Source: Azolla caroliniana
Lineage: Eukaryota; Plantae; Polypodiophyta
Assembly (NCBI GenBank): GCA_043228905.1
Contig: JBHGNT010000021.1
Coordinates: 10,850,001-10,914,000, forward strand
Direction: 5' to 3'
DNA: 64,000 bases
The notes under the pieces: model-generated
The model's input: only the letters and a program-made list of their open reading frames with translations
Database searches by the model: none
Told to the model about the DNA's origin: nothing
Program-made: the position numbers and the translations under genes
Part shown: positions 492 to 56,129 of the stretch, piece by piece
Layout of the letters: the number at the start of each line of letters is the position of its first letter
Numbering within the stretch: position 1 is the stretch's first letter

Positions 492-497
492 CAATTT

Positions 498-514
498 TGA
501 TGACCACGATTCCT
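498..514 (+). promoter_or_regulatory. Element A primer-binding site (decayed, tRNA-Arg type)
   Basis: TGATGACCACGATTCCT versus TGGCGACCACGATTCCT in B and C; same 6-nt spacer after the LTR. Confidence 0.8.
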
Positions 515-4146: not shown

Positions 4147-4257
4147 CAGGGGAAGAAATGCAGAGTTCATTGTAGTGGTGGGTCATACAAATTCTCACAA
4201 ACTTTGAGAGCTGTAAAGTTAATGAGTTAGACTAAGACCACGTGCTTTTGTTGTTAG

Positions 4258-5315
4258 ACAAGGAAGAAACGTTTAATGAAAATGGAGATACCGATTCAGA
4301 GCCACAACATGAAGAAGAATTTATCGTCCTCGTAGGTACATGTTGTGAACCCTCTTATATAATAGTTATTTTGACCATATCACCCAAGTGACAATAATGG
4401 TTTTGGTCTATTAATATATAGAAAATGATGTAAAATCTTGGCATGATTCAGAGCCCCAACCTGAGACTCGTACCATCCCAAGCAATAATGAAGAGTGTGA
4501 TACCAATGCAAACCAGGACTTGCAGCACATGACAAACACAATCATCTGCAAAGACTCATCTTCAAAATTTCCGGATGGAGATGTAACAGTAGGTAAACGA
4601 TTGTCCCTTAATCTAGTATGTTAATTGATATGGCTAGGTTCCTTCACTTTGTAAGAAGGTGAATTGATATTGTTCTTGTTATTTGGGATAGAAGAACATG
4701 GAGATTCCCAAATAGGATCAGATGATTCAGGTAGTCTATGGAGCAATCTTGATTTTTTAGACTCAGATAGCACCACACATGAGGAATGTGAAATCACCCA
4801 AGAAGAGGAGCTGAAGAACTTTGACAGTATCGTAAACGTGGGGCAAGACTGTATCATTAAGGGAATTGTAGCTACCACCCAAGAAGAGGAACAAGGTGGT
4901 ACTACGAATCACATGTATTACCAAAACACTCCAAGTAGCCTGCACATGGAACAAGATTGTACAAAGAACCAGGTGTCTAGCTTCAATCATGAGGAGTTGC
5001 AATGAAGATGGCAACCACCCAAGAAGGGGAACATGTTTGTACTATGAATACCGTGTTACTGCAGAACACTGGTTCTACCCATGAAGAGTAGATTGATGCT
5101 AATACTATCGACAAGATCTTCTTGGAAGTGTGTGCGTCTCAGACAGTTGCAGTAGAGCACAAGGTTCCCTCAAGCTTGCCTCCCCCCTCTCCGATGATGA
5201 ACTGCCACTCAGTAGTCTACTACCTCGTGGCTTTAAGATGATGAAGAAGAAGGGTGTGGAATCTGAGAAGAGTGTAACAAAAAATAGACGCATTACAAGA
5301 TCTAGAAAAAACTAA
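4258..5315 (+). pseudogene. 3' part of a spliced gene for an acidic low-complexity protein with a basic C-terminus; probable accessory gene of the DNA transposon
   Basis: Exons 4258-4335, 4422-4592 and 4692-5315 joined by GT-AG introns of 86 and 99 bp, all phase 1, reading open across the junctions (DKEETFNENGD.., ENDVKSWHDSEP.., EEHGDSQIG..); frameshift/stop after ~5000; ends KNRRITRSRKN*. Confidence 0.55.
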
Positions 5316-5808
5316 AAACAAAGTTTTTTGTATTTAGATCGTTGTTTGTAATTGATTACCATATGAGCAAGTCTTTGATTAACTGCTTCTTGACACTGTT
5401 TTGGTTTACTTATCCTGAATTTGAACTTGATACTATTTGAGTACTCATCTTAGTGACTAATTTAGTACCAACTTGATATGAAATGTACTAACTTTGATAC
5501 ATATATTTGTAAGAATGTGAATTTGATACTATTTGAGGTCTCATCTTAGTAAGAATGTCACTTGTTATGCACACATATGACATTGACACTTGTTATGGAC
5601 ACATATAGACAGGATATGTCTAGGTTAGTAAACACTTAGCACAATATTAGTACTATATTTTAATGCATATGAACATGGTATGTATACTTGAACGAACCAT
5701 TTTATTAGTACTAGCAATTAACATGTTCAATCTGTTCCCTCATCTAGTCAACCACACCCTCATTAGTGTACCACACACTAGAAACATGTGTGGAATGAAC
5801 ACTCCTAT

Positions 5809-6227
5809 TGTTACCGGCCGGCAAGGAGTCCAAAATACGGAGTGAAGGAATTAATTAAGTATGGTTGTAAGTAAGCATAGTATGGACGGACGGACTGGAA
5901 ACGGTATGCCGTTCCAGATCCGGACGGATCCCGAATAGGTGCGATAGGCACCGTTTTGTACTACGGGCCGGAAACCTATTTAAAGGCCCGGACCCCATTG
6001 TAATCGCAGCGGATAATTAATAGAGCATATGGTGTTTATACTTCTGTGTTGATTTCCGTTCTGTACTTACTGTTATATCTTACGCGTGTAATTAACAAAA
6101 GCGATCTAATCGTGTAACCTACGTAAGTCGGTGTAATCGTTGGATCTTAATCCTATGCCGTAATCACCCTTTGGTGAAGTGTTTCCGTGACACCTTGTGT
6201 TAGGCGTTGTCCGGTCAGAGAATAACA
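5809..6227 (+). repeat. Element B 5' LTR
   Basis: TGTTACCGG...AATAACA; near-identical to 15247-15665. Confidence 0.97.
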
Positions 6228-6233
6228 CAGTTT

Positions 6234-6252
6234 TGGCGACCACGATTCCTGC
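6234..6252 (+). promoter_or_regulatory. Element B primer-binding site, probably tRNA-Arg(UCG)
   Basis: TGGCGACCACGATTCCTGC, 6 nt after the LTR and identical in C. TGGCGACCAC is complementary to the recalled ..GUGGUCGCCA end of eukaryotic tRNA-Arg(UCG). Confidence 0.75.
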
Positions 6253-6280
6253 TTTCTCGCAGCGAACGACGGCTTAATGG

Positions 6281-9200
6281 ATGACGAGACCAACGCACGA
6301 CCTGGTTACAGACCGAGCTCGACGCCTCGCCGAACGGCAAAGACGACGTGAGACTTTCCAGCAAGGAGCGCACGAAATTCGCTCGGATCGTTCGTTCTCC
6401 AACGAGATCCGGAGAGTCGCGGAGGAATCTCTTCGGTTACAGCAAACTCGCGACCAGGACGACGGAAGCAGTCTAAGTAGTCTCCGGGAAACCGAACGCC
6501 TCCTCGAGGCGCTGGCAAGCGGAGAAAACGAGGCAGAAGCCTTTTCAGCCTACGAATCGGATTCCGAAGGGGGATACAACGTGCACACGAACTACCGGAG
6601 CAACAACGATACCCCCGGCGGCCCGGAGGACGACGGGTCGGAGACCGTGCCGACTCCAGAACCGGAACCGTTCGACCAGGGCTATCCGGAACCGCAAACG
6701 GAAGCCGTCAACCCACCAACACCGGAAGTGGAAGAAGCAAAGCCACCGACACCAACTAAAGAGCCGGCGAAAGTACCGGAAGAAGAGCCGGTGAAGGAAC
6801 CGGAAAAAGAACCGGAAAGATATCAACAAACGCCACTAAACCACGGCCTAATACTGGACGACGACATGCCGTTCCAATACTCAAAGTATCGCGATGATCC
6901 GGACGCGGAAGCGCATGTTCATGCCTTCGAGCAGACATGGGAAGCAAATCACACGTCCCAGCGAATGACACCGGAGGAAGAAGAACGCTCGAAGATAGCG
7001 GAATTCGGGGTCACGTTGGAAGGACCAGCGACACGATGGCGGCGGACGCAGGACCCGGCGACCATCACAACCTTTGCAGAATTAAAAGCAAAATTCTTGC
7101 ATTTTTTCCACAAGGAGGTCGACCAGATGACAATGGTGGGCCTATTTTATACGATCCAACAGGAGGCAGGGGAAAGCATTCCCCAATTCGTCATCCGTTT
7201 CCAACGAATGCATAGCCAGCTTGCCCGTGCACCCCCGGAGGAGGAATTACGGACGATATTCTTAAACGCACTCCGGGAACCATTACGCACGGTGTGCACG
7301 GTGATCGACTTTCGAGGAAGCACCATTGACCAGGTCATTGACCGGGTCAGAGAAATGGAAAAGTCAAGCTCATGGCTTACACTGGGAGCGCTGCAACGGG
7401 CGTTACCCACAGATGAAGATCTCCGGTTCCGGCAGGCAATTCAATGCACAATCTGCTTGAATGCCGGACACTCGGCAGTGGAGTGCACCATGCGAACCCA
7501 GTGTGTAATTTGTCAATCCAAGAGTCATACAACGGACCGGTGCGAGTATAACCTGCTAAACCGACAAGCACCACCCGTCCGACGGATCGAGCCAAGAAGC
7601 AACCAAGACGAAGATGAAGATCGTTGGCAAAGAATGAACCGGTACCGACCGGCACAGGATGTCCGGTACGGAGACAGACAAGAGAATGATGGCCGGTACA
7701 GGGATCGGCATGATAACTACGACCGGTATGAGCGATCGGACCGTTATCGGGAGTCCAACAGACGACACGAGCAATACGACAGAGACCATTCCCCTTGTTA
7801 CCGAAGGCACCAGGAGGACTACGGCCGATTTTACGATCCACCACGACAGGACTACCGAAATAAAAATAAGAATAATAAGAAACGTAATTTCAAGAAAGGT
7901 GGTCACCCTAGGGACCCGGAACAGGGAACCCCAAGGAGCCAACCGGCACAGAACGCACCACTCACTACGGGACCGGCTACCAGCAATGCTGAATCCAGCA
8001 ATACCCGTAAAGAGTATTGCTACTACTGCAAGCAGGAAGGCCACTACAGTAACCAGTGCCTGGCAAAGAGCTACGATAAACGACCAGCAGTTAATATGGT
8101 GGTTCCGGAAGTGGCGGATTTACAGCAAGTAACCACACGGTCGAAAGGCATGGCCAAAGAGTGGGAAACACAAGAGGCCATACGAAAACAGGCGACGGAA
8201 TGGGTGAAGGAAGCCAATGAAAGGAACGTCGCGGACGCGGAACGGCAAAAGGAGAATACCATAGGGAGTGCCGGCGGTAGCCACCCAGAAAACGAGACAT
8301 GGCAAGCACTGCAAGAATGTCAGATCACGTTGCCATTAGGGAGACTCTTGCAGCTCGTGCCGCGATTTACGGAGGGACTAAAAACGGTCATGACAGACGG
8401 TATAGTCCCACCGGCACCAGTCCTCTTCTCGAATCCGGAGGAGGGACCGACGGTGGTGGACACTAGTAGTCCGGTGATTACAGCTATTGTCAAAGGGCAC
8501 GAACTTCCCGGCACAGTAATCGATGGAGGTTCCGGGGTGAACGTAATAAGCCTCCGCACGTGTGATGCCTTGGGTATACATGAATGGGAGCCATGTCCGT
8601 TCTGGCTACGGATGGCGGATACGAGCTCTGTACGGCCGACGGGCTTAATACGGAAATTGGAAGTCACCATAGGAGGTCACAAATTTCACATCTCGGCTGT
8701 AGTGCTGCAGCTACAGGCGCAAGGCGCGTACCCACTGTTGCTGGGCAGACCATGGTTGAAAACAGCACACATCAAGCAAAATTGGCGGAAAAATATGATT
8801 ACCTTCCGGCGCGGAAAAGCCAAGGTCCAGGTACCGACACAACCACGGACGAGCAACGGTAAGGAATGCACACCGCTGTATGCGGAATGCGTGAACATGC
8901 TTGAAGGGTTGGCAGACGACGAAGAAGCCCAGTACTTGGAGGAACACCCGAAGATCGTACCACTTTTCGAGATTGACGTGGCTGAAGCCGTAGCGCCATA
9001 CTTGCCGCAGCGGGACGAAACCGAAGCCGAACCAGACAAAGATTCGATTCGGGAATTACGGCAAGCACAGGAAGCGTTGGAACGGGAAATGGCCGTTTCC
9101 CAACGGGTAAAAACATCCCAGCTTGACGAAGTAAACCTAGGAAGCAAGGACGAATCAAAGCCGGTACACATCGCCAAAGAAATGAAGCCGGAAGATAAAG

Positions 9201-12096
9201 CGGCGATGATCAAACTTCTCACGGAGTTTCGCGACGTATTCGCCTGGTCATACGAAGACATGCGAGGGCTGGACCCTCAATTATATCAGCATCAGATCCA
9301 CTTAGGCAAGAACGCGAAACCAGTGGCGCAAAAACGTTACCGAATGAACCCCAACTACGCCGCCAAAGTGAAGGAGGAAATCGACAAACTCCTAAGAGTG
9401 GGCTTCATCCGGCCGGTAAAGAAAGCGACGTGGCTGAGCCCCATCGTCGTCGTCCCAAAGAAGAACGGTAAAATCCGAGTGTGTGTAGATTACAGGAAAC
9501 TAAATGCAGCCACAATTACGGATGCATTCCCTCTTCCGTTCACGGATGGAGTACTGGATGCCGTCGCCGGCCATGAAGTCTATAGCTTTTTAGACGGGTT
9601 CAGCGGATACAATCAAATCCGGATGCACCCTGACGACCAGGAGAAGACAGCGTTCGTCACCGAATGGGGGGTGTTTGTGGCCGAAGTAATGATGTTCGGA
9701 TTAAAAACGGCACCAGCAACTTTCCAGCGAATCATCATGGAGATCCTCGGCGAATACATTCCAGCCTTCATGCAGGTGTTCTTGGATGACTTTGCAGTCT
9801 ATAGCCGGGAAAAAGACCATTTGCAGCACCTACGGTTATGCCTTGAAAAGTGTAGGTTATACCGGCTAAGCTTAAACCCAGCAAAATGCATCTTTGGGGT
9901 TTCAAGTGGAATCTTACTGGGACACATTGTAAGTAAGGAGGGCATTGCGGTCGACCCGGACAAAGTAAACGCGATACTAGGGGCACCGCCGCCGAAAACG
10001 GCCAAAGCACTAAGCCGATTCTTAGGACAGATCCGGTGGCACAGCCGGATGCTCCGTCACTTGGCTGACTTGGCTACACCATTACACACCGCGGTACATC
10101 GGACACCGTTCCAATGGACGGATACGGAGGATAAGGCGTACAATGCCCTGAAGGTACTTTTGTCGCAAGCACCCGTCGTGCAGCCTCCGGATTGGAGCAA
10201 GGAATTTCATGTGTTCGTTGACGCTTCCGACATCGCTATCGGCAGCGCCTTAATGCAACTTACGGAGCCTAAATGGTACCGGCCGGTATATTACGCCAGC
10301 CGGAAGCTGTCCCAAGCGGAGAAGAACTATTCAACGACGGAACGGGAGGCCCTGGGCATGATCTACAGTGTAACAAAGTTTCGTCATTACCTATTGGGAA
10401 GGAAGTTCTCCTTTCATGTGGATCACTCGGCGCTCCTGTACTTAGTGTCCAAGGCGTCCTTGACCGGTAAGTTGGCCCGTTGGACCTTGCTGTTGCAGGA
10501 GTTCGAATTCGAGATCTTTCACCGGCCCGGTATCCAGCATGTCGTAGCAGACTACCTGAGCCGGTTAGAGTCCGGAGAATCAGGCGATGGAGTATCGGAT
10601 GAATTCCCGGACGCAGAGTTATTCCGTATCACCCCGGAAACGGCAGCGGATGACACGGTGGCATCAGAAGATAGGTGGCTGACAAACATGCACCAGTTCC
10701 TAAGCACGGGCCTGCCACCGGAGGAAATGAACCGGGACGAGAGGAAACGACTGGCGGTGCAGAGCCGCAATTTCTGTCTGTTACGGGACACTCTCTACCA
10801 CAAAGGAGCAGATGGAATATGGAGACGGGCAGTCCGTAGTGACGAGAAACAAGTAATCTTACGGGAAGCACACTGTGGGGTTGCCGGAGGACACTATGCC
10901 GGGGAAGCGACGGCAAGGAAAGTATGGCAGAGCGGCTTATGGTGGCCCACGACGTTAAAAGACGCCGTCAAGTATGCTAAGGAATGTGACCTATGCCAAC
11001 GAATGGGCCAGCCTACGGAGCAAGCACGGATGCCACACCAACCGGTACTTCCACTAGAGCCATTCCAGAAGTGGGGGTTGGATTTTGTCGGACCGTTCAA
11101 GCCACCGGCAATGAGAACGGGTAATCGTTATGTCATCGTGGCAACGGATTATTGCACTAAATGGGTGGAGGCTAAGGCCTTGAGAGACAATACCGCGTCA
11201 TCCACAGCAAAATTCCTGTACGAGAACATTTGGTGCCGATATGGATGTCCGATTGAATTAATCAGCGACCAAGGAGGGCACTTCCTCGGCCAGGTAGTTG
11301 AAAGCTTAACAACGTTCTATGCCGTGGTCCATAAACGGAGCACACCGTACTACCCACAAGCGAACGGGTTAGCAGAGTCAACCAACAAAACGCTCCAGAA
11401 CATCCTCCGCAAAATAGTGAATGAAAACCGGACGGACTGGGATACAAAGCTCCATAGCGCGCTGTGGGCGTACCGAACGGCATACAAAACAAGTATCCGG
11501 ACAACGCCGTTCCGGTTAGCGTTCGGCTTAGAGGCGGTCATGCGGTGGAATTTCAGGTACCAAGCTTACGGATCCAACTACGGGAACGGTTGAATGAAAA
11601 GGAGTCGGAGGAAATGCGGCTAGCAGCACTATGCGAACTGGAGGAGCAACGGCTGGCCAGCATCCTACACATGGAACTGGAGCAACGATGACGGAAAGCG
11701 TTCGTTGACCGTCACCGGAAAGGTAATGAAAAGATGTTCGAAATCGGAAAGCCGGTGCTAGTATTCCAAACGAGGATGGGCAAGATGCCGGGTAAACTCC
11801 GGTTTAGATGGACATGCCCGTATTGGCTGACACGGGAATACAACGGGTCCTATCAGTTAGGGACACTTGCCGGTGAAGTGCTAGGCAAGTGGGTCAATGG
11901 ATTTAGACTAAAGCCCTATAAAGGACCGATGCCAAGTAACCCGTTTATGCAGCCCACCGGCACTATACCGGGAACCTGTCCGGGAGCGGTACGGATGGAA
12001 GAAAAAGACGACGGGGAACCCGTAGCAGAGGCGAAGGAAGACGCGGCAACCCGTAAGGAACGCGGTAAGGGTCCGAAGGGACCTACGGATGTGTAA
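6281..12096 (+). CDS. gag-pol: Element B Gag-Pol polyprotein (gag, 3 CCHC knuckles, PR, RT, RNase H, integrase); C-terminus disrupted
   Basis: CTICLNAGHSAVEC, CVICQSKSHTTDRC, CYYCKQEGHYSNQC; PR VIDGGSGVN; RT LDGFSGYNQI/FLDD; RH VDAS..NYSTTERE; INT HHCC and WGLDFVGP..SDQG..NGLAE. A 1-nt deletion at ~11543 and a TGA at 11689 break the tail, which ends at 12096. Confidence 0.95.
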
Positions 12097-12109
12097 GATC
12101 ACACACCGT

Positions 12110-12114
<5 letters not shown>

Positions 12115-12142
<28 letters not shown>
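12115..12142 (+). repeat. Poly(A) run in the pol-ORF2 spacer
   Basis: ~28 A; shorter A runs sit at the equivalent position in A (~33385) and C (T run ~22365). Confidence 0.85.
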
Positions 12143-12144
<2 letters not shown>

Positions 12145-12469
12145 ATTAAAAATCGAGGTATGAACGGACGTGAAAGCAAGGAGCGAAAAGGTACGTAGTG
12201 GGCATTTAAGAGCCGCCACATTGCTTAATACTAAATTGGTACACGACGTGCGCATGCTCGAAAAAGGCGCCAAGACGCACAGAGAAAAAGAAGAACGCAT
12301 GGAGACCTTTTTTTTTCGTGAGCCAAGAAGCACAGAAGCACCAAGGCAGTGGAAGCTTAGCAAACGCGAACCTGCACTCAGAGAAACCCCACGTTCGGAA
12401 CGCTCTCTCTCTCACTCTCACTCTCATCACCACTCTACCTCGCCATCTTTCCTCGACCTCGAAGCAGAC

Positions 12470-15194
12470 ATGGAACCACAAACGCTGTCGGAAGCGGCCA
12501 GGAAATGGTTCAGGCAACACGGATTGGATGGGTTCTTGACCATCATGGAGGCACCACCGCACAAAGAAGCCGACCGGGTCATCAAGGAGCTCGACACGGA
12601 AGTCATCACCGAGGAAGCGATCCGTGCGCTAACAGGCCTTCCGGAGGGAGGTATTTTTCAGATTGATAACCCAACCTCGGAGCAACTCATCCGATATTTC
12701 GGTGAGTACTCTGTAGCCGGCAAAGGCTATCGAACGCAGGGCGGCGAAGATCCGCTATTCAGGGAGATAGCTCGAGTGCTCCATGAGTACGGCCACGTGT
12801 ACCCCCGACCCCCTGTCATGCCAAAAAATCGGGGCAGGGATGATCATAGCCACCTATGAAGGGATCAAGGTGGACTGGCCGATGTTGATTGCAGACGGTT
12901 TGTGCGCGGCAATCGACATGGTACGAGGGAAGGACAGTAAGGAGGGCCGGAAGCTGTGGCATGCCGTAGCTCAGTGGATAACATTGCTCGTGCCGCCGGT
13001 CGAGACCGTTCAGCCAAAGAAGCGGCCAAGATTATCGGAAGGAAGCACTTCGAAACCCGCGTCCAAACGACAGCAGCTGCTGGCGTCAAAGGCGACGAAA
13101 GGGAAGAAACGGCTCCCAGAACCGGAGGAGGTGTCACCGGTGGGACCCGTTAAGATAACCATACGGCGACCAGGACAGAAGGAACCGGAACCCCTGAGCG
13201 CACAGAAACATGCCGTTACCCAGGAAGAGAAAACGGAGGAGCCAGAAGAGCACCTCCAACGACGGTCAAGAAGTAGGACCGCCGGGACAGAGGGGGAGCG
13301 TTCGGACCCGCAAAAGGAAGAAACGCCCCCAACTCAACCTGAGCAAACCACAAGGGAGGAACCGGAACCGGTGCGTATAGAACCGGCCTTGTCGACTTCT
13401 ATACCAGAAGTCATTCCAACGGCTCCGGAGACGGCGAGAACCGGAACTCAACAGCCGGCGAGCCCAGCCAGCACACACGGCGGCCAAGGAGTAGAACCAG
13501 AACGACAGATACAGGCACTCAGGCCAGACAATTCCACAGTGAACGAGCCGACCCGACCAGTACAGCAGCAAGGCACCAGTAGCATGTGGCTACGGTGGGT
13601 AGGCGAGCAGATCGCCGGAGCGGTCGAGTACATAGAGGCGGAGGAGAGAGCGCACCACGAACGGTTGCTCGTCACAACCGTAGATCTAGAGACGGCCCGA
13701 TCCAGAATCCGGAGCCTTGAACAAGACTTGGACAGGGTCACAAGGGAAATGGCTCAATTGGCTTTGACAACACAAGTCCAAGCACCGGTGACTCCGGGCA
13801 ATGTACAGAATAAAGCGTCAGATCAACCTGTACATAGCAATCAGACCCCGGCAACGGAAACCGTTCCGGAGAGAAATGCGGCACAAGCCCAAGAGCTTGC
13901 GGACTTAAAGGATGAGCTAGCTGCCCAAGAAGCGCTAAGGAGCCGCGAAAGAGAGTTGAAGACGGCAGCGGAGGCAGAACTCAAAAAGACTGCTGAGAAT
14001 CTACGCCGGGCCGAGGAGAGCTTACGAAAAGGCCACCAAGCGTACGACCGGCTCAAGGAGGATAAGGAGAAAATGCTGCAAGAGAAGGACAGGCTCCGGA
14101 GAAACGCCGAAACAGAAGTAGAGCGCCTGAAAGAGGAACTCCGGCAGCTAAAGGAACGGGAGGACCGGAACCATCGCCAGATCAACGGCAAGCTCAAACA
14201 AAAAACGGAGGAATTTGAGCACTTGCACCGGGAGTATAAACGGTTGCAAACGGAGCACAAGGAATGGACGGATGAGCTCCGGCAAGTAGTTGATCGGACC
14301 GCAACGGCATACGCTAAGGAACAAGCGGAAACCAGAAGACGGTTGGAAGAGGCGGAGAAGGTTCGGACAGAGCTCCTCAGGCAACAGCAGGTGGAAAAAG
14401 AAAGAGCGGCGGAGGTACTGCAGAGGCTGCAGACAACATATCAAGGGCAGCTGACGCGCTACAGAGAGCAGGCGGAGGATACGGCGAATCTCATCAAGCA
14501 GTTGAAGGAGGAACGACAAGTTGTGGAAAGTAGAGCGCAAATGGGAGCAAGTCGCATCCAGGATATCATGCGGGCCTGGTTGAACCAGACCAAGAGCTTG
14601 ATTGACAACGGTTCCGTCAAATGGTGGACCAAGTGGGCCACGAACGCGGCGGAACTCCAATTGCTCCGGGCCGACGTAGAGAACCGGCGGAAGGAGGGAG
14701 ATGATTGCTATATGCTGACTTCCGAAGACTTCACCGGTATAAGAGATGAGCTGGCCGAAGACTTTCAAGCCTTGGCAGAGGACCAACTAGGGCAAGTCCG
14801 GCAACTTGTAGCTCAGCTGGATGACGACAGGCTGGAGGCGCAGATCCAGTTTGAAAGCTACGAGAGGTCCCGGATCCGGGAACAGAAAGCACGAGAACCG
14901 GTTACGGTCAACCTCAGTGATGAGGAACCGTTACTGGAAGGAGACCGGACCGGAAGCAGTCAAACGGAGATGCCGGAGTCAGAGAAACAAACGGAGCAGC
15001 CGCCTATAGAGCAGCCGGAGCAGTCTCAGTCCCAACCGCAACCACAGCAGCAGCAGCAAGCAGAGCAGCCGGAGCAGCCTCAGTCCCAACCGCAACCACA
15101 GCAGCAGCAGCAAGCACAACCGCAACAACCACAACCGGAAGAACAAGTGGAAACTCTGGAACAAAGTATTTTGGACAATTTGGGTGAACAATGA
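12470..15194 (+). CDS. Element B ORF2 (~900 aa): conserved N-terminal domain, Pro/Glu linker, long coiled coil, Gln/Glu tail; one frameshift at ~12830
   Basis: MEPQTLSEAARKWFRQHGLDGFL..YFGEYS..KGYRTQGG..MPKNR|AGMIIATYEGIKVDW; homologues in A, C, G and H. Confidence 0.88.
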
Positions 15195-15206
15195 AGGGGC
15201 CGAGAA

Positions 15207-15246
15207 GGGTTCGACGTACAAGGTACTGTCCCACGGGCGTGCCATG
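15207..15246 (+). other. tRNA-Arg 3'-end-like motif (inverted PBS) at the PPT position of B
   Basis: GGGTTCGA CGTACAAGGTACTGT CCCACGGGCGTGCCA TG, then the LTR; no purine tract adjoins the LTR. Confidence 0.85.
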
Positions 15247-15665
15247 TGTTACCGGCCGGCAAGGAGTCCAAAATACGGAGTGAAGGAATTAATTAAGTAT
15301 GGTTGTAAGTAAGCATAGTATGGACGGACGGACTGGAAACGGTATGCCGTTCCAGATCCGAACGGATCCCGAATAGGTGCGATAGGCACCGTTTTGTACT
15401 ACGGGCCGGAAACCTATTTAAAGGCCCGGACCCCATTGTAATCGCAGCGGATAATTAATAGAGCATATGGTGTTTATACTTCTGTGTTGATTTCCGTTCT
15501 GTACTTACTGTTATATCTTACGCGTGTAATTAACAAAAGCGATCTAATCGTGTAACCTACATAAGTCGGTGTAATCGTTGGATCTTAATCCTATGCCGTA
15601 ATCACCCTTTGGTGAAGTGTTTCCGTGACACCTTGTGTTAGGCCTTGTCCGGTCAGAGAATAACA
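15247..15665 (+). repeat. Element B 3' LTR
   Basis: Matches 5809-6227; followed by TSD CCTAT. Confidence 0.97.
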
Positions 15666-16845
15666 CCTATCTTAGATATCTCTAGGTTAGGAAACACTTA
15701 ACACAGTTTTAGTACTAACCAAAGATACTTTTCACCATAAATTGTATGTAAAAGATATCTAAACAAAACACCGAGATTAAGAGCTTTGTCATTGCAAACT
15801 CATAAGAAAACCAAAGATGATATATTTCCATTCATTTGTAGGCCAGAATTTACGATACATGCGAATGTTACATATGAACAGTGTTTGCCATTCTAAGAAT
15901 TAAAGAGGGAGACCTCCCCCAATATGTGTTCGTGAACCTCTTTGGGGAACTTGTAGACAGTGTTGTATCCCTTAACCTTGTGTTTTGCTTGACTCATAGA
16001 GAACTTGATTGCGTTGACAACATTCAGATAGATTATTGTAGTGGGTGCATCTTTTAATAATGCATACGTGTTCTTGCATTGTGGTAACTTTGCATAGTAG
16101 TTGCCATACATGACACACTCACCAACGTTGAACATGTTGCCCCAACCGTCCCTCACGACTTCTTCCAATATTGTATTTCCTTGATTGCACACCACAATGT
16201 AGTAGTCTTCAAAATCTTCATTTTGAGGAGATTTGAGCACTGCAAAATGATCTCCAACTTCCAATAATACTGTCAAGTCCTCACATTGGTTGTAGTGTAC
16301 AATATTGTCTGCATGTTCGTCTTCTTGGATATCCACACATTGTTCAATCTCAAGCTTCTGTAGCTTCCATGGCTCCACAATTGATAGATTGGTGCATTCA
16401 TCCCAAGCTTCATCTAAACACATGGAACAAAAGCACGATAAACTGCGGAATAACAATTGTGTTGTGTCCCTGCAACTAAACCCTAAAACACAATGGGTCT
16501 TGTGCGTCCCTTTCATAGTTTTACAACCATACGATTTACTCTTATCCACCTCATTAGCACCAACCTCAATAAACAATCTATTCTTACCATCATTTGACAT
16601 CTTCCATGTTAGCCACTCCACAACATCATGTGCATTTTGTAACTTCACACCTTTATTATCCAACTATTCACTTGTAAGAGCACGCTTGATCACAGACCCC
16701 GCACCATCGTGCTCTCCTTTTCCATTGCATCCTAATATTTGTCAATGAGAAGTATCTGGGTGTTTTGCATGACAGTTAGCCAACAAATAGAGTTAGTGCA
16801 TTACTAGAGCTTACATATCTTAACATAACTTAAACCAAAATTTCC

Positions 16846-17500
16846 ACTAATGCATGAGAGAGGACAATACTAAGTTATAAATTAAAAGAAATGAACGAGA
16901 GAGGACAATACTAAGTTATAAATTAAAAGAAATGAACGAGAGAGGATAGTACTAAGTTATTGATTAGTACTAATGCATGAGAGAGGACAATCCTAAGTTA
17001 TAACTTGGACTTAATGAGCAAAGTTGGACAGTACTAAGTTAATAATTAGTAGTAATGAACAAAGTTGGACACTCATAAGTTATAAACTTGTGTTAATGAA
17101 AAAAGTTGGACAATACTAAGTTATTATTTAGTACTAATGCACTAGAGAGACCCATCCTAATTAGTACTAATGAACAAAGTTATAAATGAGTAGTAATGAC
17201 TGAAAGAAGATAGTACTAAGTTATTCATTAGTACTAATGCACGACAGAGGACAATGCTAAGTTACAAATTAGTACTCCTACATGTGGGATGACACCACAA
17301 AGTTATCAATTAGTACTTGTGAATGCGGGATCTGAGTACTAAGTTGTAAAACATAGTCAGTGCTTGTGCATGTGGGATGATAGTTCTAAGTTGTAAAATA
17401 AGGGTACTTTACAAGGCGTTGAACCGTAGTCAGTACTTGTGCATGTGGGATGATACTACTAAGTTGTAAAATAAGGATACTTTTCAAGGCTTTGAACCAT
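16846..17500. repeat. Degenerate ~41-42-bp minisatellite inside a transposase intron
   Basis: Recurrent unit ~ACTAATGCATGAGAGAGGACAATACTAAGTTATAAATTAGT, roughly 13-15 copies. Confidence 0.85.
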
Positions 17501-18689
17501 ACATACAACACTTACACCATAATTAGTACAAACATTTCAAGACAGTATTGGTGCATGTAGTAGGAGAATTACTAATTATATTTTATACAAACATTTTTTA
17601 TGACTGTTCATATAATATTCGTACTGGTAGGAAACTCAAGCAATAGATGATGTACTATGAAGTATTACCAAAATAGACTTCCAGTTATAAATACCAATCA
17701 TATGGATTATTTCCTTACCTTGCAATAAAGTAGAAGGACCGAGCCACCTTAAATTGCGAGGCAACACCATCAGGCTAGACCCAATGGCGATAAAAGTTAA
17801 CACCCAAGGACAATAAATCTGCGTGGTGAAGCTTAAAACAATGTTGAACAAATAGCGTATCATATTTTTTATCATCTGAAATATAGAATATTGCTTTCTT
17901 ATGTAACTCACCATCTTTTCTCTAGTAGCAAATATGTACAAGTATTGTACATTGGTCATTGTACCAATGCATTGACTGAACCTCATTTTGAACTTTAAAG
18001 GTATAGTTCTCTGCAAAGTCAATAATAGATACCATAACATCCGGTGGTAAGTTATTTATACATTCCTTGAACTGTGAATTTTGCCAATAACTCCTAAAGT
18101 TATGTGGAATGAACTCCCCGAGTTGCTTCTTAAACTCTGAGACAAGGGTAGCAGCACATGTCTCCTTATATACTTCATTGATACGCTTACTAATGAGACC
18201 CTTACCTATATTTTCTGTCACATACTCTAAATATTTCCATTTCACAATATGACAGTTATCCACGTCAACCTCCTGTTTACAAAATAACGGTTGTGGGCAA
18301 ACCTTACATGTTCTGACAAGACATGTACGATTATGCCACTCAGATGACAGTTGTTTTTCACAAACAAAAGACCTCCATAGCTCAAAAACTGTTGCATAAG
18401 TCATGTTTCACGCATTACATCTATTGCCACTCCCATTTGGTCTACATACCTCACAAGTGCAAACACACCCATCCCTGTGTATACCCTTAGAATCAGTACG
18501 CATACTGTTCACGCCAAGCCTTAACATGTCCATTTTAATGTGGTGCACACAACAACATGTGTTCCTCTCCTTTAACTTTCTAACAAAAAATGGTTTCAAA
18601 CCTTGGAACATGCAAAATCCAAGATTGATGTTAGGATGTTGGTCTTTGAAGTTCATGAACAATTCAGCCTACATCACTCAATAAATAGG

Positions 18690-19119: not shown

Positions 19120-22023
19120 TCAGTCTTCCTCCAAAATATCGAGCACACTTTGCTCGATAGTGTCAAGTGGTGCTTCTTCCTCCTGTTCCTGTTCCTTGCC
19201 TGCCTGGTCTCCGACCTCCTGTTGGGTAGGCTGTTCCGTAAAAATTTTCTGCTCCGGCTCTACTTGATTCCGTGGTGCCGGTGCTTCCTCACCGCTTCGT
19301 CCGGGTTCTTCCTGTTCTCCCTCCGTTCCTGGCTCTGTTCTGTTACCGGTGTCGCTTTCTCCGGTCTCGACTGGTCGACTTGATATGCCTCCTTCCTCTG
19401 CTCTGGTGTCTTCCGGTCTCAGCTCTTCTTCTTCTCCGGCATCGGTCCGCTCCTGCTCTTCTTCGAGTTCGTCTTCAGGTATTCTTTGTCGGGGTTGTTC
19501 GGTGTCGGTTGGTTCATCTTCATCCGGTCGTGTTCCCTCACCAATAGTGGTTGGCGTCGTTCTTCCCTTAGCTTCCTGTCGTACCCGGTCCTGCTCGTAT
19601 CTCTCCAACTCCAACTGAGTTGCGAGCTGCCCGTCATCCAACCTCTCTACCAACCCTCGGATTTCTTTGAGGTGTTCTTCTGCTAAAGTGTAGAAATCCT
19701 CCGACAATTCCTCCCGAATGGCGACGATACTTTCTTCATCCATCTTGTAGAACCTGTCGCCGGTCTTCTTCCGATTCTCGGCATCCGCTCGGAGTGTCTG
19801 CAGCTCGGCTGCCTGTTGTGACCACTCCTTCCATAGCTTTTCCGTACTTTCGTTGATACTTGCCTGAGCTCGGGTACTCCATCCTGACATGATGAGCTTG
19901 ATCCGGTCAACTCCTGACTTAGCATGCACATAAGCTTCCTGCTTTTCCTTCCTTGCCCGTTTTGTAATGTTGGCCATTATCCGAGCCTGGGCCTCGTAAT
20001 CTGCTTTCTGCTTTTCATAGGTACTCTGCAGTTTGCTGATCGTGAAGGTCGATTTTTCCTTTTCTTCATTCCTGATCTTGGTCAGGTCCAGCTTTTCCTG
20101 CCTTAGCGCCTCTAATTCCTTCCTTCCCTCCGTTGCTTGGGCTATTTCCGCCGACAATGCTTCCTTGTTGGCACTGACCTCATCCATCGCCTTAGCCAGG
20201 TCTAATCGGGTCTCCTTGAGCTGCTCTTTCAGCTTCTCTATTTGCCGGTCATAGTCTGCTGCTCGTTTTTTGTTGTCCGACTCGGCCTGCTTGTGATCTC
20301 TGTAGAGACGGTCGAAGTCCTCCGTCTTCTGCTTCAGGCGTCGGGTTGCCTGAGCTCTTAACCGATCGTCCCGGTCCTTCTGTTGTCGGAGTTCTTCCTG
20401 CAGTCGTTCTATCTCTTGTTCAGCATGTCGACGTAGTCGGTGCTTCTCCTTCTGCAGCTTCTCTTTTTCTTCTTGCAGTCGGTCATTAGCGGCTCGACCT
20501 TTCCGGAGGCCTTCTTCCATTTTTCGTCTGTCATCCTCCACCGCTTTCCGCTGCTCCCTTTCTCTTTCCCTTAATGCCTCCTGAGCTTGTAACTCCTCTC
20601 GTAAGGTTTCTATTATTTTTTCGGTCTCAGGGCCGGTTTGCAAGGCTACCGGTTCTGGTTCTGGTTCTGGTTGCTTCCTTGTTGTCCCGACCGGCTCGGT
20701 GACAGCTTGTGCTTGTTGGATTCCTTCCCTTGCCTGCAACAGCTCCCCTTGCATTTCCTCGATCCGTGTTCGGAGCGCGACCAACTCCTGCGTTGTTGTA
20801 TGCGTCAGCTGTTGCCGACACGTTTCTTCTTTCTCTAACTGGTCCGCTACTCCCGATAACTGCTCCGAAAGCCATCTCAGCCATTGCGGCTTTGTTCTTC
20901 CGATTTCGGGGTGGCCTTGCTCACTTAAGCCAGGCTGATTTTCCGGCCTCTTCTCTGGCTCTGGCTCCAGCGCTCGTTCCTTCTTCTTCTCTGGGATGAC
21001 CGGTTTTCTGAAGTCCGGCCCAACCGGTGTCGGTGCTGCTTCCCTGGGTACAGGTTCCGGTGCTATTTCCGCCTCGGCTACTGGAGATGGTCCTTGCGCC
21101 CTCTGTTGAGTTCTGTCCACTGGTGGAGCCGGTCCTTTCGCCCGTTTCTCCCGACCTTGTCTTGCTGGGAGTCTTACCAGTGGTTCGGATGAGTCTTCTG
21201 TTTCAGTTTCCTCCTCCGGTGCGGGTACCAGACGAACCTTTTGTCTAGAGACCTCTGGTTCCGGTTCCGGCCGTCGCAGCGTTATATGGATTGGTTTGCG
21301 CACTACCGGTTCCTCCTCAGCCGCTTTCCCTTTGCCTTTACCTGCCGGTTTTGCCTTTGTGGCCGGTTCCTGTTGCTGTCGTGATGGTCCTTCCCCCTAC
21401 TGTTCTGCTTCTTGCGGGGTCCATCCGGGGGTGTGTTTCTCCAAGATCTGTCGGCGCTTTGTGACCTGTTTCGGCGTCGTCTCCTGCCGACCTCTTTTCT
21501 TTTGTGTGATGGGGAGTACCGATGGGACTAACACCGTTAGCCATTGTGCTATCCCGGCCCATGGCCTTTTTCCTTCCACCAGATTTTTGATGGCCTCCTT
21601 CAATCCTTCGGTTATGAAATGGAGCCAGTCTATTTGTAAGCCCTCGTACGCTGCTATCAAGAATGCTGCCCGATACTTGGCTATGGCTGGGGGACGGGGA
21701 TTCACGAATCCGTATTCCATCATAGCGCGGGCTACTTCTCCGAACAGCAGGTTCTCTCCGCCCTACATTCGGTTCGCCTTGCTGCTGATAGAGTATTCCC
21801 CGAAATATTCGAACAGGATTTCACTCGAAGGGTTTTCGATTGTTTGCAGTCCTCCTGCTTTGATCCCCGTGATTGCCTGCACCGCTCCTTCCGTGACTTC
21901 TGATATATCGATCGATGTTGCCGCCTGCTCTGGTTCTGCGTGTGGTGGAGCGTCGGCGATCCGCAACAAGCCTTTTAACCCGTTCTCCCTCATCCATTGG
22001 CGTGCCTCTTCCGACAGTACCAT
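19120..22023 (-). pseudogene. Element C ORF2 (~968 codons, coiled coil) with two in-frame TAG stops
   Basis: ORF pieces 21763-22254, 21397-21723 and 19120-21303 share one frame; MVLSEEARQWMRENGLKGLL..YFGEYS..AYEGLQIDW. Confidence 0.88.
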
Positions 22024-28740: not shown

Positions 28741-30835
28741 ATAGGCAACATTAATAGAAGCATTTAGTAAACAACAAAATATTTAAAACCAAATAGATAA
28801 AAAATTGAATTACCACAGTCATCTCCAAGAAGTGTCTTGGGTGAATCTGGTACCTACCCCGACTTATACGTTGTCTACATACATCTTTTTTATTTGGTGA
28901 GACACGTGTGTTTTTTGCCCAAAAGGAACCCACTTCCTCAATAATCTCATGAGACAATGCATCACATCGTCGTCTACGGCCTAACCCCAACCACTTAAAT
29001 TGATTTGATTGTATATTTGTCCGATGCTTGCTCAAGTTCCTTCTTTGGATACCAAGTGCTAAGGCAACTTTAGTATCACTATATTTTTCTTTAGTTGTAC
29101 CATTTACAACCATGTGAAGGGCTGCTCTCTTTGCACCAATCTTATCTATGCTCTCTACCTCTTTCACTAAGTGTAGGGATGACTTCATACACTCTACAAT
29201 TTCCTCTGAAACACATTGGTCCCTAAACTTAATATTCTCCATGTCTTCATTCAAAAGTTAATGGTACAACACACTAGAGATAATATCCCTACGATCCTCC
29301 AAGCTAAATCTCTCAATTTCTTCTAGTAAATAACGGACTATGTGAAGAACCAACCGTCTCTTGCTCCTCTCAGACATAGATTTGCTAAGGGACACCTTGC
29401 TCTCCTCATCGACGACCATTGTCACTCTCATATATTCTAGCACCTAATTTCTTGTTATTTCAGCACCTAATTTCTTGTTATTTCAGCACCTAATTAATCA
29501 GAATAAGTGCTTAATACATCATAAAATAAACATAGTTAATACCCCATAGCATAAACATCAACCGGAAATCGGATAAACATTTGAGAGTTGCCACAGTCAT
29601 ATATTCCTTTTCCAAAACAATTAACTTTTAAGAAATAATTGCATCAATTAACTTGTTGTTTGGAATCATAAGTTTTATGACTCACAAGATGATGAGATGC
29701 ATGGATACTATTTACATCATGAAGTATTCTTAACTAGAGTTTAAGACTAAGATAAGTATAACATAACTCATGTTATGCATGAGTTCATAACACAAACACC
29801 ATTCATTTGCTTTTTCCATCAAAAACGTCCTCATCAATGAAATTCAAATCTGCTGATTCTTCAAACCGTTTATCAAGCCTTATTAACAGATTGGTATTCA
29901 TGTTAAACATTTCAACCCATATAAAACCTTAACATGGATCAATTTAAGACTCCCCTGAAGATTACCAGAACATACAAAACAAATTTATGTTTAGCGTTTT
30001 CCATGGTGAATAACTTATGTCAACTCAAACTGTATATGTTGCTGCTCTTGGTTGGTCATTTTACAAGCCCAACCTGGATGTTGCTAATCCATTATATCAT
30101 TAAAACATCCACAATGATCAGTAAAATGACCAGAAGCACTTGGTTGAAACCATTGGTCAGAACATTGTAGACTCCAAATATGCAGGTTCTAACCACTTGG
30201 CTGGTGTAAATATTTCAAATTCATGTTATCATGTCATGTTTACATTATTTTAAGATTCCTATTCAACATTAATCTTCATACGTGCCAATTTAAGATTGCT
30301 AGAGTATACATTCAATTAATAGTATTGTATAGAAATAATCACTTTATAGAAATAGGCGTAGACATACCGAGTGAAAGAGAAGATGGAGAAGACATACCGA
30401 TGGAAGGAGAAGATGGGGAAGACGAGTGACGCAGAGAACAAAAAATCGGGTTTCGAGTGTGTTGTGAAGACCTGAGTTGGAAGGCGGAAGACTAGAGAGC
30501 GATGTGAAGACCTGAGTTGGAAGGCGGACGACTAGAGTGCGCTGTGAAGACATGCGTTGTCTCAGTTGGAAGGTGGAAGAGGAGAAGCGCCAAAAGGATT
30601 TAATGTGGCATCCTAAATTAAACGTGAGGGGGAAATAGCCCCAAAAACAGTCCTCAATACGCAACAACTGCCCCCCCACCCATTCCCTGACTTTAATGCA
30701 ACGTACACCACTCCCTAAAAAGATTTTAATTATTTTCGATTTTTTTAAAATCACTCAGTACTAACAGTACTCGTGTTTTTTTTGGCCAAAAACAGTACTT
30801 TTTTGGTACATCGTAGCATGCTTCAACCTCGTAAA

Positions 30836-31221
30836 TGAACGTGGAGGCCATGCACAACTAAAGTAAATTTTATAAGGACTAAAGTAAAGGGCATGTGGAT
30901 GCATGCAATGGAGCTGAAGATGCAAACTGGAGTTCCTCATGCAAGTGTATCTTCGTGTGGTAACGGAGAATCTAAAGCGAAGTGTGAGAAGGGAGGAGAA
31001 AAGCGTTCGGATGGACAAGACTGGAACGGACAAACAAATTGGATCGGATGGTGCACAAGCCATAACTGAACGTGGAGGCCATGCACAACTAAAGTAAACT
31101 TTATGAGGGATTAAAGTAAAGGTCATGTGGATGCATGCAATGGAACTGGAGAGGCAAACTGGAGTTCCTCATGCAAGTGTATCTTCGTGTGGTAACGGAG
31201 AATCCGAAGCGAAGGGCGAGA
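30836..31221. repeat. Two ~150-bp direct repeats at 231-bp spacing
   Basis: TGAACGTGGAGGCCATGCACAACTAAAGTAAA...GGTAACGGAGAATC at 30836 and 31067. Confidence 0.9.
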
Positions 31222-31231
31222 CGGGGGGGGA

Positions 31232-31650
31232 AAAGCTATCTCTCGATAATCTATAGATCCTAATGGTCCTTAGGGGGATCGAAGCCATCTTCTCAAAAAA
31301 AAACCTAATTTTATTATGGAAGCCATCTTTTGGAAAAAAAATCTCTCTTAGGGATGAAATCCATCTCTCGCATAAACTCTAATTTTCCTTACGGAAGCTA
31401 TCTCTCACATGAATCCTAATTTTCTTATCGAATCCATCTCTCACATGAATCCTAGTTTTCTTATCGGATCTATCCCTCGAGGAAACCCTAACCCTAGTTT
31501 TCTGAAGCCATCTTTCGAATAAACCCTACTTGTTTTTGATTGAAGCCAAAAACCCTAATTTCCTTATTGAAGCCACAACACTCAAGAACCCTAGTTTTAT
31601 GAAGCCATCTTTCGAATAAACCCTAATTGTTCCTTATCGAAGCCATATCT
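31232..31650 (+). repeat. ~36-39-bp tandem array with telo-box (AAACCCTA) motifs
   Basis: About 11-12 units resembling GAAGCCATCTTTCGAATAAACCCTAATTGTTCCTTATC. Confidence 0.85.
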
Positions 31651-31879
31651 CCGTTTCTTCTAATCTATTATTACTCTATTAATCTCTGTAAGCTAGAAGT
31701 TTTGGAATCCCAATCTCGAGATACATTGCAATATTTCTTTTTCTTTGCTAATGAAAATTACTAAATTTTCTCATTTCCGTTAATTTGTAGAATGTAAATG
31801 CATGAATTTGATATCCTCTGGTCGGAGGCCCCGGGGTCTTGCCTCAAGTTCACGTGTATTTGTTGTTTTTTTCGCGACA
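31232..31879 (+). mobile_element. Element J: 3' part of a truncated LTR related to element E (5' limit uncertain, possibly ~30831)
   Basis: Ends TTCGCGACA exactly where A pol resumes (GCG GAC TAC = ADY). The last ~70 bp (ATCCTCTGGTC..CCCCGG..GCCTCA..CGACA) align with the reverse complement of 39339-39410. Confidence 0.65.
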
Positions 31880-33366
31880 GCGGACTACTTGAGCCGGCTG
31901 GAATCCGGAGAGGCAGGTGGCGGAGTCCGGAATGACTTCTCGGACGTTGTGAGCTATTCAAAGTCACCGCGTAAATGATAGTGGATGAGAGAGTGGGAGA
32001 CGAGGATAAATGGCTCATGGACATGTATCAGTTCCTGAGTATCGGACTACCTCTGGAAGAGTTGAGCCGGGATGAACAAAAATAGTTGGCAGTTCAAAGT
32101 CACCATTTTTGTTGAATATAGGATACATTGTATCAGAAGGGAGCGAACGGAATCTAGTGGCGCACGGTAAGGAGTGATGAGAAGGAAGCGATTTTATGAG
32201 AGACCCATTGTGGCGTTGCCGGAGGCCACAATGCTGGAGATGCCACCGCCCGGAAGATTTGGAGAAGTGGGCTATGGTGGCTGACAACCCTGAAAGACTC
32301 GATCCGGTATTTGTAAAGAATGTGATCTTTGCCAAAGGATGGGTCAACTTAAGAACAAGCGTGGATGCCCCATCAACCCGTATTGCCACTAAAACCTTTT
32401 CAGAAATGGGGATTGGACTTCGTGGGGCCATTCAAACTGCCGGCAATGCGAACAAGAAACAGGTACATCATTGTCACGACCGACTATTGCACAAAATGGG
32501 TAGAAGTGAAAGCGCTCAGGGATAACACCGCGGCATCAATGACGAAATTTTTATACGAATACATATGGTGTCAGTACGGATGCCCGATTGAGCGGATCAA
32601 CGACCAAGGTGGTCATTTCCTAGGGCAAGTATTGGAAAGCTTGACGACATTCTACGCGGTAGTGCATAACACGCCTTACTATCCGTAGGCGAATGGATTG
32701 GCGGAGTTCACAAATAAAACTCTCCAAAATATTCTTTGGAAGATCGTCAATGAGAACCGAATAGACTTGGACACAAAACTACACATCGCGTTATGGGCAT
32801 ACCAAACGGCGTACAAAACAAGTATCCGGACGACACCGTTCCGATTGGCATTCGGATTGGAGGCAATTATGCCTATGGAGTTCCAAATTCCCAGCTTACT
32901 AATACATGTTAGGGAACAGTTAAGCGAGAAGGAATAGGAAAAGATCCGGTTAGCAACATTGTGCCAACGAGAAGAACATCGGATAGCCAGTGTGTTGCAG
33001 TTGGAGCTCGAACAACATAGGAGAAAAGCTTTTGTGGAGCGGCACATACGATGAAATGAGAAGGAATTCGGCATCGGCAAGCCAGTGCTAGTATTCCAGA
33101 CCCAGATGGGCATGATGCCGGGGAAGCTGCGGTTCCGGTGGAGCAAGCCGTTTTGGATTACGAGGAAATTCAATGGATTGTACGAACTAGTCATGCTAGC
33201 CAATGAAGTATCGGACAAGGGGGTGAATGGTTTCCGATTAAAACCATACTAAGGACGAAATGCCGAGGAACTCGTTGAAGCAACCGGAGACCGACACAGA
33301 AGAGGTAATCGGGGGGAGCCTACGCTGACAATGGAGCCCGTACCTTCAGGTACAATGGACAAGTAG
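31880..33366 (+). pseudogene. pol: Element A integrase region (decayed)
   Basis: ADYLSRLESGE.., KWGLDFVGPFK, TNKTLQNILWKIVNENR. Confidence 0.9.
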
Positions 33367-42571: not shown

Positions 42572-42612
42572 TGGGTTTGACATACAAGGCACATTCCCAC
42601 GGGCGTGCCATG
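42572..42612 (+). other. tRNA-Arg 3'-end-like motif (inverted PBS) at the PPT position of A
   Basis: TGGGTTTGA CATACAAGGCACATT CCCACGGGCGTGCCA TG, then the LTR. Confidence 0.85.
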
Positions 42613-43078
42613 TGTTGGCCGGTGGCCGTAGTATGAAAGACAAGTGGGGGATGAGTCGGAAGAGGAAATTAAGTTATTAGTATTTGTCATTAATTAGCTA
42701 GAATTAAAATAGGAATGGACAGATCTTGAAGAGTTGCACCAATTTGGATCGGGACCGATTCATCACCGGTTGCCGATATGGCCCTGTTTTGTAAACAAAA
42801 CCAGATGCCTATAAAAGGATCTGAAGAATGATGTATTAATGGACAGAATTAATATAAGTAAAGTTGGCTTTAAGATTATTGTGCATCTACTTACTTTCCG
42901 TTCTATGCTTACGATCGATCATATCTTACACGTGTAATGAACTTGTGTAAGTTGTTAATCCGGAACCAGTCGGATAAAGTGATATCTGTGTCGGAAGCAT
43001 AAAACTGTAACCACCCCTTTGGTGAAGTGATCCAGAAGGACACCCTGTGTTAGTGGCAAGTCCAACCCAGGATTAACA
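42613..43078 (+). repeat. Element A 3' LTR
   Basis: Homologous to 12-491; followed by TSD ATTTA. Confidence 0.92.
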
Positions 43079-56078: not shown

Positions 56079-56090
56079 TGGCACGCCCGG
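56079..56090 (+). promoter_or_regulatory. Element G primer-binding site, probably tRNA-Arg(UCU)
   Basis: TGGCACGCCCGG, 5 nt after the LTR; complementary to the recalled plant tRNA-Arg(UCU) end ..CCGGGCGUGCCA. Confidence 0.75.
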
Positions 56091-56129
56091 TTACAGCTGT
56101 GAGTGCACAACGAACTTCGTTGAAGGTAA

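Follow-up and report, generated by a model that had tools for sequence, protein, structure and literature searches.

Ty3/gypsy elements from the fern Azolla caroliniana carry, immediately before the 3' long terminal repeat (LTR), a conserved block that matches the 3' end of a host tRNA-Arg(UCU) and stands where the polypurine tract (PPT) would be expected. Judged from its position and its conservation, the block is most likely the plus-strand primer site of this gypsy lineage, used in place of a PPT, and it points to an undescribed way of starting the plus strand. All described retroviruses and LTR retrotransposons, to our knowledge, start that strand from a purine-rich, RNase H-resistant tract. 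If the block is a primer site, an abundant plant lineage would have arrived at a new solution to a step thought to be universal, whichever RNA does the priming. The first-pass annotation of this DNA knew of no such description, and none of a tRNA-like or inverted primer binding site (PBS) serving the plus strand was found in the searchable full-text literature, subscription-only journals lying outside that scope. A scan of viral contigs for the motif gave 0 matches. The survey of Neumann et al. (2019) deals with PBSs, and PPTs are not covered in it (PMC6317226).

Elements and their 3' LTR junctions

The window, meaning the whole 64-kb stretch of A. caroliniana DNA analyzed here, contains nested Ty3/gypsy elements A, B, and C, delimited by self-comparison and by reading of the junctions (Table 1). 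Element A is old and decayed, and B, C, and further insertions are nested within it. The LTRs of the three are mutually only 59 to 64% alike, which bears out the strong divergence claimed earlier. Direct TG...CA LTRs, 5-bp target site duplications (TSDs), and the order gag-PR-RT-RNase H-integrase are all those of Ty3/gypsy elements, and so are the PBSs, TGGCGACCACGA in A, B, C, and seven public contigs and TGGCACGCCCGGT in the related element G. The PPT that a Ty3/gypsy element should have at its 3' LTR is missing from A, B, and C. Tat/Ogre/Athila-like non-chromoviruses have an extra open reading frame (ORF) between pol and the 3' LTR, no chromodomain, and a non-Met PBS, and some have a second (archaeal-type) RNase H. 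Element B has the extra reading frame, ORF2, which matches no Pfam family; a chromodomain and a second RNase H were looked for in B, and neither is present.

Table 1. Coordinates of the features in the window (minus-strand features of element C are given in element orientation)
Feature	Position	Strand	Details
Element A	12-43078	+	LTR pair 84% alike; TSD ATTTA
A, TSD	7-11, 43079-43083		ATTTA
A, 5' LTR	12-491	+
A, LTR-PBS spacer	492-497	+	CAATTT
A, PBS	498-509	+	decayed
A, block	42571-42612	+	hairpin minus two pairs; 17 nt before LTR intact
A, motif CCCACGGGCGTGCCA	42596-42610	+
A, 3' LTR	42613-43078	+
Element B	5809-15665	+	LTR pair 419 bp, 99.3% alike; TSD CCTAT
B, TSD	5804-5808, 15666-15670		CCTAT
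B, 5' LTR	5809-6227	+
B, LTR-PBS spacer	6228-6233	+	CAGTTT, 6 nt
B, minus-strand PBS	6234-6245	+	TGGCGACCACGA
B, gag-pol ORF	6281-11593	+	1770 aa; gag, CCHC knuckle, RT, one RNase H, integrase
B, ORF2	12783-15194	+	803 aa; stop 36 nt upstream of motif
B, block	15207-15246	+
B, T-arm 5' side	15207-15214	+	GGG+TTCGA
B, hairpin HP1	15213-15230	+
B, motif (tRNA-end copy)	15230-15244	+	CCCACGGGCGTGCCA
B, spacer	15245-15246	+	TG
B, 3' LTR	15247-15665	+	TGTT...AACA
Element C	28740-18690	-	LTR pair about 98% alike; TSD CCTAT
C, TSD	28745-28741, 18689-18685		CCTAT
C, 5' LTR	28740-28361	-
C, LTR-PBS spacer	28360-28355	-	CTATTT
C, PBS	28354-28343	-	TGGCGACCACGA
C, block	19111-19070	-
C, T-arm 5' side	19111-19102	-	GTGGA+TTCGA
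C, hairpin HP1	19103-19086	-
C, motif (tRNA-end copy)	19086-19072	-	CCCACGGGCGTGCCA
C, spacer	19071-19070	-	TG
C, 3' LTR	19069-18690	-
Element G, 5' LTR	55591-56073	+	3' end of G outside window
G, LTR-PBS spacer	56074-56078	+	CAATT, 5 nt
G, minus-strand PBS	56079-56091	+	TGGCACGCCCGGT; complementary to tRNA-Arg(UCU)
G, in-frame stop in ORF2	62819-62821		single
Other ORF2 copy	19120-21720	-
Other ORF2 copy	40890-42273
Other ORF2 copy	44316-45507
Other ORF2 copy	61703-64000
AT-rich stretch of A	4147-5808, 15666-18689, 28741-31880		GC 35-41%; hosts B and C
Tandem repeat array	16821-17383		41-nt unit; within AT-rich stretch
Head-to-tail duplicate	46047-46414		179-nt unit, 98% alike
Gypsy fragment	46550-48861	-	adjoins the duplicate

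The window contains exactly three copies of the 15-mer CCCACGGGCGTGCCA, against 0.07 matches expected by chance even if two mismatches are allowed. In A, B, and C alike, TG separates the motif from base 1 of the 3' LTR (TGTT...); these three sites are those reported in the first-pass annotation as an invariant 17 nt before the LTR. These 17 nt are 47% purine, with GGG as the longest purine run, whereas GGAGGAG and GGGGGG adjoin the 3' LTRs of the unrelated elements F and I, which served as controls from the same window and have Met-type PBSs at their opposite ends; the contrast drawn earlier between the two groups is therefore real. The 3' end of element D is too decayed for its junction to be read. 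A conserved PPT at some other place that maps to plus-strand starts had been named in advance as one finding that would speak against tRNA priming of the plus strand. The nearest purine runs lie 38 to 95 nt upstream, at variable distances, and are not conserved. LTR edges are set by the start points of both DNA strands. With an LTR that begins TGTT and the usual order of primer, dinucleotide, and TG, the plus-strand primer should end in ...GCCA. The position of the block at the junction, taken with the lack of conservation in the upstream purine runs, makes it the best candidate for the primer site.

The reverse complement of the motif, TGGCACGCCCG, is the start of the element G PBS, so the identity noticed earlier with the first 11 nt of that PBS holds. 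Minus-strand DNA at the motif reads AACA-CA-TGGCACGCCCG, which is the layout of an LTR-PBS junction. On that opposite strand the motif resembles an ordinary PBS, and a true PBS annotated on the wrong strand would be one explanation of it. However, the gene order, which fixes the strand, contradicts this, as does the separate PBS at the true 5' end.

Conservation across lineages and plant species

Relatives were fetched, with ORF2 as the handle, from public contigs of plant-associated metagenome assemblies. All ten that reach the 3' junction carry the motif, which with A, B, and C gives 13 junctions; contigs L002, L004, and L005 end or break before the junction and stand outside this count. One of the ten is B-like (L001), and another has an ORF2 that is 58% identical to that of B (L003). 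Six are C-like, with ORF2 about 35% identical to that of B (L006, L007, L008, L093, L094, and L095). L096 is of the G type, its ORF2 being 89% identical to that of G in the window and its LTR start equal to that of G. In L030, on the minus strand, the motif is followed by a G-family LTR and then by a 34-nt PBS. The motif ends 2 nt from LTR base 1 in 13 of 13 junctions, the spacer being TG, GG, or CG. In the alignment of the 13 sequences, TCCCACGGGCGTGCCA, the 2-nt spacer, and TGTT are essentially invariant, while the deeper LTR and the upstream sequence vary. The 21 nt from TCCCAC to TGTT are invariant across lineages with LTRs that are about 60% alike and ORF2 proteins that are about 34% identical.

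The sequencing runs that contain this DNA bear the labels of a plant, its relatives, or leaf or plant metagenomes, and its atlas neighbors are Streptophyta. Logan contigs of four runs were also aligned to the window at a likeness of at least 80%; these are contigs and not reads with molecule ends. Summed contig depth rises 10- to 70-fold over bins 15199 to 15267 in the four runs. No variants at a share of at least 5% were listed for positions 15190 to 15296 in any of them, and many were listed to either side of this interval. In dozens of contigs the match begins only at position 15207 or stops at position 15253, with heterogeneous sequence beyond. The depth peak and the points at which contigs diverge delimit a conserved unit of about 15207 to 15253, which is common to many diverged lineages and to at least three plant species. 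A comparison of the motif with its flanks, proposed in the first-pass annotation, thus comes out with the motif far more conserved across lineages and species, in the 13-sequence alignment and in the contigs alike. Some assembled contigs give the order ORF2-motif-LTR-PBS-gag, which we read as paths through collapsed LTRs and not as proof of tandem elements.

A nonfunctional relic or hitch-hiker does not fit perfect conservation beside LTRs that are about 60% alike, in at least four subfamilies and several plant species, and is ruled out on that ground. Taken together, a relic without function and an error of orientation or annotation are left with a negligible share of our expectation.

Identity and origin of the block

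The block is collinear with tRNA-Arg(UCU) from position 48/49 to position 76, about the last 28 bases including CCA. The 25 to 29 identities exceed those of 300 out of 300 shuffles. Two differences separate it from the tRNA: a 13-nt insertion right after A58 in the T-loop, and the loss of one C at the border of T-stem and acceptor stem, a 1-nt deletion that is universal among the lineages. The tRNA end given in the first-pass annotation is real. A metagenome scan for ends in ...CCCACCGGGCGTG gave 84 loci, nearly all of them tRNA-Arg according to ARAGORN and mostly with anticodon TCT. Plant-type tRNA-Arg(UCU) genes lie in contigs L043 and L079, which come from the same samples (ERZ1034375 and ERZ1034377) as the element-carrying contigs L006, L030, and L096. 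The extra C ascribed to the tRNA is there as well, since the motif equals the tRNA end with CCA minus one C.

A genuine tRNA gene or a complete tRNA-like structure can be ruled out. ARAGORN finds no complete cloverleaf in the window, L030, or L096, the block has no Rfam match even at an E value of 10, and a complementary 5' strand of the acceptor stem was not found within the element. CCA is added to tRNAs after transcription, so its presence in the block means that the copy derives from a mature tRNA. Reverse transcriptases stop at A58 when copying a tRNA primer, and the 18-nt segment beyond it is what is normally copied into a PBS. The insertion in the block lies at A58, and the 17 nt that follow it are this 18-nt segment less one C, which suggests that the block began as a reverse-transcribed copy of a tRNA primer.

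The motif, as CCCACGGGCG, is in addition complementary to positions 1 to 10 of tRNA-Arg(UCU), with a G1-U pair followed by 9 Watson-Crick pairs. The missing C makes this complementarity 10 pairs long instead of 7. It may reflect a functional contact, or it may simply follow from the symmetry of the acceptor stem.

A covarying hairpin upstream of the motif

The 13-nt insertion and two flanking pairs form a 7-bp hairpin, HP1, which has a triloop and a single bulged U. Compensatory changes occur at three of its pairs (four haplotypes, 9 cells), the covariation score was reached by 0 of 500 shuffles, and slid controls collapse. Broken pairs occur only in the decayed element A. HP1 tolerates one G-U pair, and does so on the plus strand only, where the minus strand would have a C-A mismatch. 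Its distance to CCA is fixed, and it lies 14 nt upstream of the proposed cut. The 21 nt from TCCCAC to TGTT, by comparison, show no covariation and are simply unchanging. This difference suggests that HP1 is constrained as a structure and the 3' part as a sequence, either through an invariant host partner or through direct recognition by an enzyme.

The block does not stand out in its thermodynamic z-scores (0 to -1), and this holds for RNA and DNA folds alike. Two other pairings were considered and set aside. A T-stem-like GUGGG/CCCAC pairing keeps its inner three pairs and has lost the outer two, without compensation, in B, A, and L030. The columns of a second hairpin placed by RNAalifold across the CCA/TG junction are invariant, and one of its pairs is broken in L096.

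Relation of the block to the 5' PBS

Element G and its relatives have a minus-strand PBS for tRNA-Arg(UCU), with a complementarity of 13 nt in G, 34 nt in L030, and 76 nt in L046, and L096 and L030 show that the G family also carries the 3' block. Elements A, B, and C and the seven contigs have the same 3' block together with the different PBS, TGGCGACCACGA, which we take to be that of a tRNA-Arg. The use of two Arg isoacceptors, as suggested in the first-pass annotation, is thus substantiated for the tRNA-Arg(UCU) end; a tRNA gene matching the A/B/C PBS was absent from the 95 fetched loci. Self-priming of the Tf1 type was also considered for the minus strand, and no sense-strand complement of the A/B/C PBS is present in A, B, or C.

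The same block occurring with different PBSs indicates that its function is independent of the minus-strand primer tRNA, and this speaks against a role in primer bridging or PBS pairing. Such a role belongs to a wider reading, in which the block is an RNA (or single-stranded DNA) signal for strand transfer, Ty3-like bridging by the primer tRNA, dimerization, or packaging, and the plus strand is primed in some other way. The ten-pair complementarity to the tRNA 5' end, lengthened by the missing C, would suit this reading, as would the conservation of HP1 as a structured hairpin and, in G-type elements, the complementarity of the motif to the element's own 5' PBS. However, A, B, and C keep the motif despite their different PBS and presumably different primer tRNA. 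Nor is there a conserved partner within the element: a search for an intramolecular (cyclization) partner of the motif in B and C gave best duplexes no better than those of shuffles, at sites that differ between B and C. The plus strand would still need a primer 2 nt from TGTT, where nothing is purine-rich, the nearest purine runs being the distant and variable ones described above. We regard a role of the block at another step as unlikely.

Proposed plus-strand priming from the block

The reading that we favor, tentatively and at somewhat less than even chances, is that the 47-nt block is a cis-acting plus-strand signal from which the element's own RNA, cut after CCA, would prime. Minus-strand DNA would be synthesized across the block, and the element's RNA ending in ...GGGCGUGCCA would remain annealed. 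RNase H would then cut directly after CCA. In sequence the RNA:DNA hybrid at this place equals the tRNA:PBS hybrid, which the same RT/RNase H already has to recognize, extend, and cut at the CCA junction. RT would elongate the new 3'-OH through TG into U3, and integrase would trim the 2-nt TG afterwards. HP1, in the RNA template, might act as a pause site or as a ruler by which the primer is positioned or delimited. We know of no LTR element with a non-purine cis primer, and such primers are normally disfavored by RTs. The exact retention of the T-arm part (GGGTTCGA) and of CCA is not explained by cis priming alone.

The first-pass annotation had instead proposed double tRNA priming. Packaged host tRNA-Arg(UCU) would anneal to TGGCACGCCCG-TGGGA on minus-strand DNA, once RNase H had cleared the genomic RNA, and its 3'-OH would be extended into U3. 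Both strands would then be tRNA-primed, by one tRNA in G-type elements and by two different ones in A, B, and C. We know of no retroelement with a tRNA-primed plus strand, and the replication scheme that would follow is likewise known for none. The observations behind the proposal, namely the tRNA end, the PBS-like layout, and the conservation, all hold; the host tRNA itself as the primer we consider somewhat less probable than the element's own RNA, although the retention of CCA, the PBS-like geometry, and the invariance suit it well. The minus-strand site is arranged as in a genuine LTR-PBS junction, with AACA followed by a short spacer and then TGG.... It offers 11 perfect pairs to a verified host tRNA, CCA included, and 5 more past one bulged C, and 11 to 13 nt is the match length of the genuine PBSs in these elements. 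The copy came from a mature tRNA, and pairing with an unchanging host partner predicts total invariance. G-type PBSs already use tRNA-Arg(UCU), so that this tRNA is in their particles, and the motif is mostly unpaired beside HP1 in DNA folds.

Against a tRNA acting in trans, the missing C has been restored in no lineage, and an inserted C at the motif was seen in no contig, contigs being prone to drop rare forms. The annealed RNA segment of identical sequence would have to be removed first, and A, B, and C would have to package a second tRNA species. The single G-U pair of HP1, moreover, becomes a C-A mismatch on the minus strand. Either RNA would yield an identical DNA product. We prefer cis priming because HP1 behaves as a plus-strand structure, because the C was never regained, because the cis RNA is already in place, and because no second tRNA needs to be packaged. 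A cis RNA signal accounts for HP1, directly upstream, and for the 1-nt deletion seen in all lineages at least as well as a tRNA primer does. What primes is directly testable, since the tRNA (...CCCACCGGGCGUGCCA), which has the extra C, can be told from the element RNA by that one C and by the upstream sequence.

Comparison with known systems

The block occupies the position of a canonical PPT, set off from the TG of U3 by a dinucleotide, presumably serves the same purpose, and is likewise more tightly conserved than its flanks. It differs in being tRNA-derived, 47% purine with a longest run of 3, terminated by CCA, and preceded by a covarying hairpin. Read on the minus strand, it resembles a minus-strand PBS in having an LTR end, a short spacer, TGG..., and an 11-nt match to a host tRNA. 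Unlike a PBS, it lies inverted at the U3 side, its template would be DNA rather than RNA, and it is not refreshed from the tRNA in each cycle, as the persistence of the missing C implies.

Tf1 self-primes its minus strand from its own 5' end, and hepadnaviruses translocate a capped oligomer. In both, element-encoded pieces of RNA from RNase H cuts replace the standard primer, as would be the case here, but neither has a tRNA-end mimic at the U3 border. Ty3 is said to have a bipartite PBS, a finding credited to Gabus et al. in 1998, and Ty1 reportedly has CYC5/CYC3 interactions between its 5' and 3' ends, credited to Cristofari et al. in 2002. What they share with the block is a sequence, related or complementary to a tRNA, that lies toward the 3' end of the genomic RNA and might join the ends of the genome. 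In Ty3 and Ty1, however, the 3' sequences are complements of the primer tRNA or of the 5' end, and the block has the same sense as the tRNA. A bipartite PBS of the Ty3 type also does not match A, B, and C, which carry the block although their PBS fits another tRNA.

Sirevirus junctions show the usual layout of primer, dinucleotide, and TG attachment site (PMC2829016). They share with the present elements a microdomain at the 3' LTR that is conserved across divergent elements, an inverted repeat at the primer, and an unusually long spacer between U5 and PBS (PMC2829016). Sireviruses, however, are Ty1/copia elements that keep a true AGGGGGAG tract, and in them the inverted repeat extends across the junction into the LTR (PMC2829016). 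HP1 lies wholly upstream of the junction.

Annotation tools that seek a PPT will miss or down-rank elements with the block, and tools that take orientation from the PBS will find one that faces inward at each LTR. The block may also bear on host control by 3' tRNA fragments, as the element has one tRNA end in sense and antisense copies.

Additional features of the elements

A tandem array of at least four units occupies L046:1-2055 (ERZ1034377). Each unit consists of a G-family LTR of about 480 bp and a whole 76-nt tRNA-Arg(UCU) that includes CCA, with a 3-nt spacer on either side. In the sense of the LTR, the array runs from LTR to a PBS extended to the full tRNA complement and on to the next LTR. 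It may have arisen from a primer read-through product, as a satellite or as a minimal non-autonomous unit.

The spacers between 5' LTR and PBS are unusually long and conserved in A, B, C, and G (Table 1). With spacers of this length, integrase would need to trim 5 to 6 nt at the U5 end and only 2 nt at the U3 end. The large ORF2 (800 to 1,100 aa, without a Pfam family) is conserved in five diverged copies in the window and in many public contigs; that of G has a single in-frame stop.

B and C, which are independent insertions of different subfamilies, have the TSD CCTAT in common, each in its own orientation and between otherwise unrelated flanks. The probability of this by chance is about 1 in 1,000, and a target preference is possible. 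Both lie in an AT-rich stretch of element A, which also contains an array of 41-nt tandem repeats. Elsewhere in the window, two head-to-tail copies of a 179-nt unit adjoin a minus-strand gypsy fragment.
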